From positions 496,001-560,000 of the forward strand of contig JAIVFI010000027.1 of assembly GCA_025558095.1 (NCBI GenBank): DNA of 64,000 nt. Reading direction: 5' to 3'. Position 1 is the stretch's first letter; every line of letters starts with the position of its first letter. The notes beneath the pieces are model-generated. The model ran no database searches. It was not told the origin of the DNA and worked only from the letters and a program-made list of their open reading frames with translations. The stretch comes from Hyaloraphidium curvatum SAG 235-1 (taxonomy: Eukaryota; Fungi; Monoblepharomycota). A program made the position numbers and the translations under genes. Below are positions 4,677 to 8,341 of this stretch, in pieces.

Positions 4677-5722
4677 TCACATCTCGCCCGCAGCCATCTT
4701 GAGCACCGCTCTGGCCACGCTCAAGCTCCCGCTAGAGAACCATCCTGCAGCCTTCATCCGTGCTTCCAGGTCCTTCGCGTCCTTCTCGGTGAACTTATCT
4801 CCCAGCATGCGGACGCAGAAGGCGGTGCAGACCTCGGCGTATGGCGATCCACAGGGAATCTGCATCGGATAGGCACGATCAGATCTTTCGATCTCAACCA
4901 CGATCCCCTGGATGCCTACCTCGGGATGCCATTGCACCGTAAGACAGCGAATCTTATTATCAGGTCCGCGCAGACAGGCTGCCTGGTGCTCAGTGAGCGA
5001 GGAAGTCCCGAGCGGCTCGAAACCTGGAGCGAGTTCGAGAACAGCATCCTGTGAACACCAGTGCATCAATCACGGGTAAGATCGCTGCCAATCCAGACGT
5101 ACCCGATGGAATTGGATGGCGTCCAGGTGCTCCTGCGGCGCCCCGACCTGCGCAAAGATCGCCCGTCCTGCCGGCGTCGGATCCACCCTGATCAGGCCCA
5201 CTTCCCAGCCTTTCGGGTTCTCCTTGACCGCGCCACCGAGTGCATGGTGCACGAGCTGGCTGTAAGACACGGAATCCACCTCAGCTAACGACAGTGTCTA
5301 GTCGGCGTGCTTCAACCCACTGTCCGAAACAGACCGCGATCAGGGGGACGCCGCCCTCGCAATACGCCCCGTGCCACGCCTTGATGAGCTCCTCCTCCTT
5401 CTCCATCCACTCCTTGCCCTCGGCGAGCATCGATGTGCTGCCCGTTAGCAGCACAGCGTCGAACGACGCTAGCTCCGTTGGGCTGGGCAGCTCCCCCGCG
5501 AACCCGCAGTAGGTCACCACCTCGACGGCGCATCCCTCCTCCTCCGCCGCTTTCGAAAGGAGCCGGCCGAACACCTGGGTCGGCGTCAGCGCCGTCCGCA
5601 GGTCAGGAGATGGAGCCCACCTCGTCGAGCTCGAGCGCTTCGGTGCCGGCCCAGGTGGGCGATGAATGGTCCTCGTTCTCCACCACCGCTATCCGGCGGG
5701 GGCAGGCACCCGATACGGTCAT
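4677..5722 (-). CDS. Class I glutamine amidotransferase-like protein (multi-exon)
   Basis: Spliced motifs FDAVLLTGS, LIAVCFGH/QLVHHALGG, KGWEVG, FH/QDAV and VQWHPE give the Cys-His-Glu triad. There are 3-4 short GT-AG introns. Confidence 0.9.
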
Positions 5723-5923
5723 GTTCGCGGCTGGGAAGCAGGGCAGCGCGCGTGGAGCGGGGATTGGGACAGGCGGAGGAACGAGCGGTGGAGCGCGACA
5801 ATCGGCACAGCCCGAAGTTGTTGCGGACACTCCGGTGCCGTTGCGAGATGGACCAACAGATCGCGCAGGATTCCCTAGATGGTTACCATCGTGTTGGCCA
5901 GCGGCGATTTGCCGCGCGCCGGT

Positions 5924-6002
5924 ACGTTCCTCGGTCCGATATCAGCCTCCGTGCCCGCGGCAGCGCCGCTTTCCGGCCCGTGGCTTCATAGTCGCAGAAC
6001 GC
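5924..6002 (-). promoter_or_regulatory. SECIS element (eukaryotic type II) in the 3' UTR of the SelU-like gene
   Basis: Minus strand reads GCGTTCT-gcgact-ATGAA-GCCACGGGCC-ggAAA-GCGGC-gct-GCCGC-g-GGCACGGAGGC-TGAT-atcggaccga-GGAACGT. This gives helix I, an AUGA/GA core, an ~10-bp helix II, an unpaired AAA and a 5-bp apical ministem. Confidence 0.85.
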
Positions 6003-6052
6003 GCCTCGCAGCGCGACTCCTCATCCGCCCGCCTGCTCATACCAGTATGTCC

Positions 6053-6832
6053 TCATGAGGACGCCGCAATCCTCTGCAGCGTCGGCAGCACCTCGGCCTC
6101 GTAGGGCGCAAAGTCGCCGAAGATCTTCTCGAGGTACTGGTACTCGATCTTCTCGGGCTTGTTGCCGACGATGACTGTGCCGCCCATGACGTAGCCCTCG
6201 CCGATCATGTTGCCCTCGACGGCCTTAAAGGCCGCCTCGAGGTGGGCCTTGACGCCCTCGTCCTCGAGGTCCTCCTTGGTGCCCCGGTGGATCTCGCCGC
6301 CGCCGACGAAGCGATAGAAGATCTTGTCCTGGTCGAGGAAGAGCTCCAGGGGCCTTCGCGAGGACGGCAAGCGTCGATTAACACGCGAGTCCGTGTGGGG
6401 CAAGCCGCGGAGGGGGGACCCACCAGTACTTCTCCTTGAACTCCTCGGCACCGAGCTCCTCCTTAAGCACGGCGACGAGCCGGAAACCGAGTTTCTCGAT
6501 CTCCTCCTTATGGGAGGCCTGTCCGACGGAGTCAAGATAAGGCCCTGGACTGTCCCCCGGGCGGCCGCCCCGACACCCACGACCATTTTGGCCTCCTCCC
6601 GACAGAACCATCAGCCTGAATATCCGTGACGACGAAGAGCGGGCGAGAACCGGGATTGGCACGGCGCGCCGCGCCGCAGGTCCGGAAACCGCTCACCGGG
6701 TCGGCGAATCACGAGGACGTATGCCGGCTTGTCCTTCCAGAGCTCCTTCGCGGGGAACTCGACCTTGTCATCGCGGCCGAAGAAGTCAACCAGCGGCGAG
6801 GCGCCGAGCTCCTCGACCGTGATGGGCGCCAT
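6053..6832 (-). CDS. SELENOU: Selenoprotein U / peroxiredoxin-like 2 (FAM213, AhpC-TSA_2 family), 188 aa, Sec47 encoded by TGA at 6611-6613
   Basis: Exons 6697-6832, 6581-6615, 6424-6518 and 6053-6353 give MAPITVEELG...LWKDKPAYVLVIRRPG-U-WFCREEAKMV...LELFLDQDKIFY...GNMIGEGYVMGGTVIVG...EKIFGDFAP. Family similarity continues on both sides of the TGA, and a SECIS lies downstream. Confidence 0.9.
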
Positions 6833-7010
6833 GTTTGTGGCGGCCAGGGCAGCGGGCCGGTTCCCTTGCCGCGCGCTCCCTCAACTCCAAACGTCTCCCA
6901 GCCTCCACTTCGCGTATATAGCGGTCCTGGATCAAGGACTGCTCCTTTTTTGGTTCCTAGACTCTGGTTCTTGAGGAAAAGGACCCTCGTCCCATCTTTT
7001 CCTCCCCAAA

Positions 7011-8341
7011 ATGGCTCCAAACGACCTCGTCGTCCCCTACTCGACCCTCCTCCCCTTCGTCGGCTCCATCTTCCGCTCCGCCGGCTGCTCCGAAGCCGAG
7101 AGCGAGCGCATCTCGCGGTACCTCATCTCGGCCAACCTCACCGGCCACGACTCGCACGGCATCATCCGCGTGCCGCGCTACGTCTCGAGCCTCAAGATGG
7201 GCATGGTGCAGAAGGACCAGCAGCTCACGGTGATCAGCGAGGGCCCGTCGCACGCGATGGTCAGCGGGAACTACGGGTTCGGGCAGACGGTGGCGCCGCT
7301 GGCGGTGGAGATGGGGATCAAAAAGGCCAAGGAGACGGGGATGGCGATCGTCGGGCTCAGGGAGGCGGGGCACGTGGGAAGGGTGGGGGACTGGGGCGAG
7401 ATGGCGGCCGAGCAGGGGCTGGTCAGCATCCATTTTGTCAACGTCGGCAAGGCCGAGGTGGGTTGCTTCGGTGCGGGGCCCCAAAGCGAGCCTGATCACT
7501 TTCATTCTTGGCGGTTCGTCCACCACGCTGGTGATCACCCCATTCAGCTCGTCGCGCCATTTGGGGGCACCTCCAAGCGCTTCTCCACAAACCCCTTCTG
7601 CGTTTGCGTGCCGCAGCCCGACGGGCGTCCGCCGCTGCTGCTGGACTACGCGACGTCGACCGTGGCCGAGGGCAAGATCCTTGTGGCCAGCAACGGTGGC
7701 AAGCCGGTTCCTGCGACGTCCATGATCACCAAGGACGGCCAGTACTCTGGCGACCCCGAGGTGCTCTGTGGGTAATCCGGCTGCTGTGTGTTGGATGTTG
7801 CTGACAAACACTCCAGACGGACCCCTCACGCCGGGCGGCCCGCGCAACCCCATGAACGGCACGGGCAGCATGACCGCCTTTGGCGAGCACAAGGGCTCCG
7901 CGCTGGCCTTCATGTGCGACGTCCTCGCGGGGTGCTTCATCGGCTCGCCGACCTCGGGGCCCGTGCCGCCGCCGTCGACCTTTGGTGGGCTCTCCCGATT
8001 GCCGGCGCACGGCGATCCCTGACCCCCTTTCGGCGACAGACAAGGCCGCGCCGTACCGCAGCTCATACTGCAACGGCATGCTCTCGATCTACGTCGACCC
8101 CGCGCGGATCGGCGCGCCGGCCGAGTTCGCGGCCAAGGCGGCCGATTTCGCGGAATACGTGCGCGCCTCCGAGCCCGCGGCGCCGTCGGTCAACCCCTCG
8201 CAACGGGTGCTGTGCCCCGGGGATGCCGAAGCCGAGACGAGAGCAAAGAGGATGAAGGAGGGGGTGCCGGTGCCCAAGGAGGTTTGGGATGGGCTGGTGA
8301 GCGCGGCGAAAGAGGTGGGAGCGGAGGTGCCGAGCCTTTGA
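7011..8341 (+). CDS. Malate/L-lactate dehydrogenase (Ldh_2, YbiC/HcxB-like), 4 exons
   Basis: Motifs ANLTGHDSHGIIRVPRY, GNYGFGQ, GHVGRVG, APFGG..RFSTNPF, LDYATS, FGEHKGSAL and VLCPGD, with three GT-AG introns. Confidence 0.92.

Follow-up and report, generated by a model that had tools for sequence, protein, structure and literature searches.

The 64,000-nt stretch of Hyaloraphidium curvatum DNA analysed here, referred to as the window, contains on its minus strand a selenoprotein U (SelU) gene, a hairpin with the features of a eukaryotic SECIS element downstream of its stop codon, and the putative start of a further gene on the same strand. On the plus strand a divergent gene of the Ldh_2 family begins upstream of SelU.

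The selenoprotein U gene and its transcript

The SelU gene is composed of four exons that add up to 567 nt and read in frame as 188 codons plus a stop. Exon 1 (6697-6832, minus strand, as are all features of this gene) opens with the ATG at 6832-6830, is delimited by a splice joint in an RNA contig and encodes exactly the N-terminus that the annotated protein of the locus (P0001) has. Exon 2 (6581-6615), which is 35 nt long and bounded by two such joints, bears an in-frame TGA. Exon 3 (6424-6518), also delimited by RNA joints, matches positions 4-32 of the Pfam family PF13911 (AhpC-TSA_2, the PRXL2/SelenoU domain), and the coding part of exon 4 (6053-6353), which begins at an RNA joint and closes with the stop TGA at 6055-6053, matches positions 37-112, collinearly with exon 3. 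The exons were searched one by one and unjoined, P0001 being the sole full-length query, and this piecewise search left exon 4 at 26.9 bits, marginally short of the 27-bit cut-off. The in-frame TGA (6611-6613) is codon 47, reads G-U-W-F-C-R-E-E-A in translation and is the expected target of a SECIS. Assignment to the SelU family is based on a U/C-x-x-C motif just ahead of an AhpC-TSA_2 domain, and both are found here, the motif as G-U-W-F-C. The selenocysteine (Sec) codon and the stop codon of this gene are both UGA.

Transcription was assessed with one public RNA run containing the locus, whose assembled contigs were compared with positions 5400-7100. A single contig of 2175 nt crosses the SelU locus with 100% identity. 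It omits exactly 6354-6423, 6519-6580 and 6616-6696, that is, the predicted GT..AG introns of 70, 62 and 81 nt on the minus strand, so spliced RNA is the source of the run. The contig retains the TGA, passes the stop codon and the entire hairpin and has its last base at 5875, 49 nt beyond the hairpin and 152 nt short of the putative ATG of the next gene. The 3' UTR covered by RNA thus extends over 178 nt (5875-6052), a minimum extent, as no poly(A) tail is visible. One and the same spliced contig carries the in-frame UGA and, in its 3' UTR, the candidate SECIS. Polyadenylation upstream of 6002, the outcome that the original prediction had set against itself, does not hold for the assembled form, since the contig reaches 5875.

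The public protein at this locus, 'hypothetical protein DFJ74DRAFT_734466 [Hyaloraphidium curvatum]' (P0001, 176 residues, 100% identity), agrees with the present reading except for 12 codons, V-I-R-R-P-G-U-W-F-C-R-E, that are spliced out. The underlying model places an intron of 117 nt (6596-6712, minus strand) where the RNA contig has one of 81 nt (6616-6696), and so drops the Sec codon together with the whole redox motif. Even in this form, P0001 matches prostamide/PGF synthase (PRXL2B; PDB 9usa) with an E-value of 4e-7. If the shorter model were right, or if the gene were decaying, the TGA would not be decoded and the hairpin would have no recoding role. The 117-nt intron itself speaks for such a reading, as does the tendency of assembled contigs to drop rare isoforms, by which a minor TGA-free form could exist. 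The assembled transcript, however, has the 81-nt intron and keeps the TGA; the excised codons are the redox motif itself (VIRRPG-U-WFCRE), the TGA occupies the same site in all three SelU paralogues of the genome, and the exons downstream of it are in frame and match PF13911. An undecoded TGA is accordingly very improbable, and the present reading puts right a public gene model in which the catalytic selenocysteine is lost to splicing.

The flanks of the gene are compact. Between the SelU ATG and the ATG of the divergent Ldh_2-family gene (PF02615; ATG 7011, plus strand) there are only 178 nt (6833-7010). The RNA contig extends upstream into that gene, which is no proof of a single transcript and suggests that the two genes overlap at their 5' ends or share a bidirectional promoter. 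On the other side, 330 nt lie between the SelU stop codon (6055-6053) and the next same-strand ATG (5722-5720), a putative start read from the DNA sequence, and the 3' end of the hairpin is 201 nt from it; both spacings agree with those originally given (330 nt and about 200 nt). This ATG would open a multi-exon gene (4680-5722, minus strand), which has no coverage in the RNA run. It had been called a GATase, and motifs AVCFG and QWHPE were noted in it by eye only; exon-by-exon searches of Pfam and PDB gave no support for that identity. The overlap of its promoter with the SelU 3' UTR, originally regarded as probable, gains no support from the RNA run, whose contig stops 152 nt before the putative ATG.

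Architecture of the hairpin

The candidate SECIS occupies 6002 to 5924 of the minus strand (5924-6002), from helix I to helix I, and its sequence is single-copy in the 31.9-Mb assembly. Every element listed in the original prediction (helix I, core, helix II, AAA and ministem) was found at its coordinates, both in the minus-strand sequence and in the folds. RNAfold recovers the architecture without constraints, and a fold in which the quartet and the AAA are forced to be unpaired reaches -29.8 kcal/mol for the whole element and -18.8 kcal/mol for its upper stem-loop. Helix I pairs GCGUUCU (5996-6002) with GGAACGU (5924-5930) over 7 bp in both the minimum free energy and the constrained folds; it is prolonged by a 2-bp extension, and above it opens an asymmetric internal loop, so that helix I and an internal loop lie under the quartet as in type II elements. 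The AUGA (5986-5989) would form the 5' half of the G.A/A.G quartet, or kink-turn core, and the UGAU (5941-5944) the 3' half. AUGA-A (5989-5985) stands opposite UGAU (5944-5941) at the base of helix II, which is the placement expected of the quartet.

Helix II is built from a 5' strand (5975-5985) that reads A and then GCC-A-CG-G-GCC and a 3' strand (5945-5955) that reads GGC-A-CG-GA-GGC. In the folds these strands pair as blocks of 3, 2 and 3 bp separated by two interruptions, A/GA and G/A, which gives nine pairs when the closing A-U is counted. Type II elements were taken to have roughly 9-12 pairs in this helix and conserved As 11-14 nt past the AUGA; here the unpaired AAA (5970-5972) follows at 13 nt, and the corresponding spacing is 12-13 nt in eight other SECIS elements of the same genome, an uncertain one (SelU-c) included. 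The AAA is part of an internal bulge, GGAAA, after which comes the ministem that defines type II (5957-5969), with the 5-bp stem GCGGC/GCCGC and the loop GCU.

At 489 nt in the mRNA, the distance between the Sec TGA and the element, calculated from the coordinates, is ample, and the stop codon precedes the SECIS start by about 50-51 nt and the AUGA core by about 63-64 nt. Were the stop read through, 36 sense codons would follow before an in-frame UGA inside the 3' core of the element itself (5944-5942; window 5942-6055, minus strand).

A stem-loop between closely spaced genes might also act at the 3' end in some other way, for instance by affecting how stable the transcript is or how its 3' end is processed, or by insulating it from the gene 330 nt downstream. 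The tight intergenic space and the end of the RNA contig so soon after the hairpin are in keeping with this reading. It leaves the exact arrangement of AUGA, AAA and UGAU unexplained, and a Sec-decoding genome with an in-frame TGA in this gene demands a SECIS in this UTR in any case; a 3'-end role in place of a SECIS is therefore exceedingly improbable.

Selenocysteine machinery, covariance models and chance expectation

The genome was searched for the machinery of Sec decoding, and the three components looked for are present. A tRNA-Sec is recognised by Rfam RF01852 at 78.2 bits and is called tRNA-SeC, anticodon TCA, by ARAGORN; the Sec synthase SepSecS is represented by three collinear exon matches; and a gene for selenophosphate synthetase (SPS) has an AIRS_C match and a clear SECIS of its own downstream. 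Five elements were detected genome-wide with Rfam SECIS_1 (RF00031), of which only one exceeds the gathering score of 35 bits. This top element scores 36.2 bits (L001, G000:C30:527673-527724, minus strand), and three-frame translation upstream of it gave no gene identity. Another follows a deiodinase-like gene in which the PF00837 match starts directly past an in-frame TGA in GSHS-U-PPF, and three more follow genes that by eye resemble SelK (GGGGS-U-GR-stop), SelW and SelH; pieces of these last three genes had no Pfam matches. The SPS element (L019, G000:C2:990569-990623, minus strand) goes undetected with Rfam SECIS_1 at E<=10.

In two further SelU paralogues the corresponding codon is TGA as well, within RRPG-TGA-LLCREEA and RRPG-TGA-FLCREEA. 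Each is followed by an ATGA...AAA...TGAT hairpin with the ATGA 50 or 65 nt past the stop, compared with 64 nt in the gene described here. One of them (L023, G000:C20:265305-265760, minus strand) has an open-loop, type I-like SECIS, and a 30-residue piece from behind its TGA retrieved nothing in a PDB search; the other (L024, G000:C43:323160-323930, plus strand) has a longer and possibly branched hairpin. One fungal genome thus holds three Sec-SelU genes with three SECIS shapes.

The Rfam SECIS families gave no match to the candidate, whether in the window at the gathering threshold or in segments of 501 nt and 96 nt at E<=10. The only matches returned, to miRNA and pseudoknot families, were judged spurious. 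Home-made covariance models were considered alongside, built from other SECIS elements of this genome with the candidate always excluded: one from two gap-free elements, one from the five Rfam-found elements and one from seven elements, which adds those of SPS and SelU-b. An alignment of the elements by MAFFT was discarded, its 3' side being structurally wrong. The candidate scored 9.8 bits with the two-element model, 11.3 bits with the five-element model (E 1.4, rank 4 in the window) and 13.2 bits with the seven-element model (E 0.56, rank 1 in the window); in the latter two its AUGA, AAA and the GA of its UGAU were aligned to the corresponding conserved positions. The E-values, from 0.56 to 3.3 per window, are background level when taken out of context. 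Held-out elements scored 26.1 bits (SPS), 16.8 bits (SelU-b) and 7.8 bits (SelU-c) under the five-element model, and since true elements reach just 7.8-26 bits when held out, the covariance test is low in sensitivity here. Other matches of these models were rejected, one of the two-element model (L002 2155-2216, minus strand) for want of the AA motif and two of the five-element model (L020 and L021) for want of the ATGA. Covariance scoring, proposed at the outset as a check, thus yields no significant stand-alone match. The expectation that the hairpin would serve as a template for finding other selenoprotein genes failed as well, in that a genome search with the seven-element model recovered only its own training set. 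The element is a concrete plausible case of a SECIS that is called neither by Rfam nor by covariance models trained on its own lineage. Its description as a canonical type II SECIS is consequently borne out for the set of motifs and has to be qualified on two counts, the double interruption of helix II and the lack of a significant stand-alone match with Rfam SECIS_1 or the genome-trained models.

How often such a hairpin arises by chance was estimated in several ways. It is no more stable than its shuffled versions (z=0.01), a score that is uninformative because the DNA is GC-rich (65-70% GC). A SECISearch-like descriptor was then applied, which asks for ATGA, 10-13 nt, AA, a helix II of at least 8 pairs that is interrupted no more than twice, GA and a helix I of at least 5 bp, with thresholds chosen when the element was already known. 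On both strands of the window (128 kb) it has one match, the candidate. First-order Markov simulations give 1.06e-5 matches per nt, or 1.4 per 128 kb, and with 1.4 expected against one observed the bare motif is not significant window-wide; across the genome the loose descriptor would produce, by extrapolation, several hundred false matches.

On these grounds the ATGA...AAA...TGAT arrangement could have arisen by chance in DNA so rich in GC, and the real signal, if any, would lie elsewhere or be of a non-standard fungal type. Besides the descriptor frequency, the covariance E-values of about 1 per window and the blank result of Rfam are compatible with chance, as is the survey of Mariotti et al. 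(10.1101/314781), which located a SECIS in no more than 5 of the 16 fungal selenoprotein genes and suggested undetected variants. Against this, the hairpin lies on the right strand and inside the 178-nt 3' UTR, where about 0.002 descriptor matches are expected on one strand and to which the E-value of the seven-element model scales as about 8e-4. In the transcribed UTR there is no alternative candidate, none of the other ATGAs having AA at the right spacing. The AAA of the hairpin comes together with a helix I of 7 bp and a ministem of 5 bp, and the complete type II set (AAA, helix I of at least 7 bp, ministem of at least 4 bp) occurred once in 38.4 Mb of simulated sequence, a figure that is indicative only, as the set was picked post hoc. 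Finally, the other selenoprotein genes of the genome bear recognisable canonical SECIS elements at similar distances. A chance match is quite improbable on balance.

The significance of the hairpin rests on its context, where the in-frame TGA leads one to expect a SECIS within 178 nt of UTR, or on the full set of type II features. It had been put forward as independent support for the Sec call; it does lend support within the setting of gene and UTR, whereas over the whole genome the loose motif is no more frequent than chance predicts. A word search for orthologues returned only the genome's own protein. A metagenome scan for relatives gave a single locus (L030, Ga0222713_10099438), which proved to be an unrelated, AT-rich gene resembling Sec63/DnaJ, with the peptide TKEDLEDEG in common.

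Proposed selenocysteine insertion and comparison with known systems

In all likelihood the hairpin works as a eukaryotic SECIS of type II (form 2), carried in the 3' UTR of a SelU (PRXL2/AhpC-TSA_2) mRNA and serving to recode UGA-47. Its anatomy and position, its presence in a spliced, TGA-containing transcript and the occurrence of tRNA-Sec, SepSecS and SPS in the genome are directly established; binding by SBP2 and the actual insertion of Sec at UGA-47 are inferred from what is known of eukaryotes in general. In eukaryotic Sec insertion the kink-turn of the SECIS quartet is bound by SBP2, which recruits eEFSec with Sec-tRNA(Sec). In H. curvatum the tandem G.A/A.G pairs of AUGA and UGAU would form the kink-turn for SBP2, and SBP2 would bring eEFSec carrying Sec-tRNA(Sec) to a ribosome paused at UGA-47. 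Decoding of this codon as selenocysteine would yield a protein of 188 residues that has a thioredoxin fold and whose redox site reads U-x-x-C. The terminal UGA, by contrast, is probably too near the SECIS for recoding. It precedes helix I by only 50 nt, which according to spacing studies of deiodinase SECIS elements is reportedly at or under the minimal UGA-SECIS distance, and it should therefore terminate translation.

The element is an ordinary example of a known signal and not a surprising one; it leaves the known mechanism of Sec insertion unchanged and is useful for re-annotation. Sec use is known in early-branching fungi, among them Gonapodya prolifera, which belongs to the same class as H. 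curvatum (10.1101/314781). In that survey SelenoU was found in other fungal lineages and reported missing in G. prolifera; H. curvatum was, as far as its accessible part goes, absent from the species covered. Sec use was later mapped over 137 early-diverging fungi, Hyaloraphidium included, and the accessible part of that study does not describe its genes (PMC9457484). The few fungal selenoproteins on record are joined here by a SelenoU whose SECIS can be identified, and the present gene places SelenoU in the Monoblepharidomycetes, where the one species surveyed was reported to lack it.

The finding also bears on the puzzle that most fungal selenoprotein genes have no detectable SECIS. Interrupted-helix elements that are invisible to Rfam and to models built from neighbouring elements might be common in early-branching fungi and might explain some of the cases, 11 among 16 fungal selenoprotein genes, in which no SECIS had been found. 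We regard this generalisation as unlikely, if conceivable; were it true, SECIS-first searches would under-count fungal selenoproteomes.

Compared with known systems, the element resembles the eukaryotic type II SECIS (RF00031, SECIS_1) in the AUGA/GA quartet, helix II, bulged As, ministem and helix I with internal loop, and also in its placement in a 3' UTR, hundreds of nucleotides past the Sec UGA. It departs from RF00031 in that helix II is interrupted twice, the spacing between AUGA and AAA is 13 nt and the score lies below anything that Rfam reports. It shares the eukaryotic consensus with the fungal SECIS elements of Mariotti et al. (10.1101/314781; Nat Microbiol 2019), which start about 40-420 nt past the stop, against 51 nt here; the apical As, present in this element, are absent there from two G. 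prolifera AhpC SECIS elements. The closest comparison within the genome is the SECIS of SPS, where the AUGA-A core and UGAU recur together with a helix II rich in GC, a bulged AAA and a ministem, in that case of 4 bp. In both elements the 3' strand of helix II bulges out by 2 nt near the quartet. They differ in that the SPS element has 12-nt spacing and one interruption, and scores 26 bits under the five-element model against 11 bits for the element described here.

As to the protein, the gene product is like other members of the SelU/PRXL2 (FAM213) family in its thioredoxin-like AhpC-TSA_2 domain, its match to PRXL2B and its redox motif RRPG-U-x-x-C-REEA. The predicted Sec of H. curvatum SelU stands at the position where mammals have Cys. 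The protein is distinctive as a fungal member of 188 residues and as one of three Sec-containing paralogues encoded in one genome.
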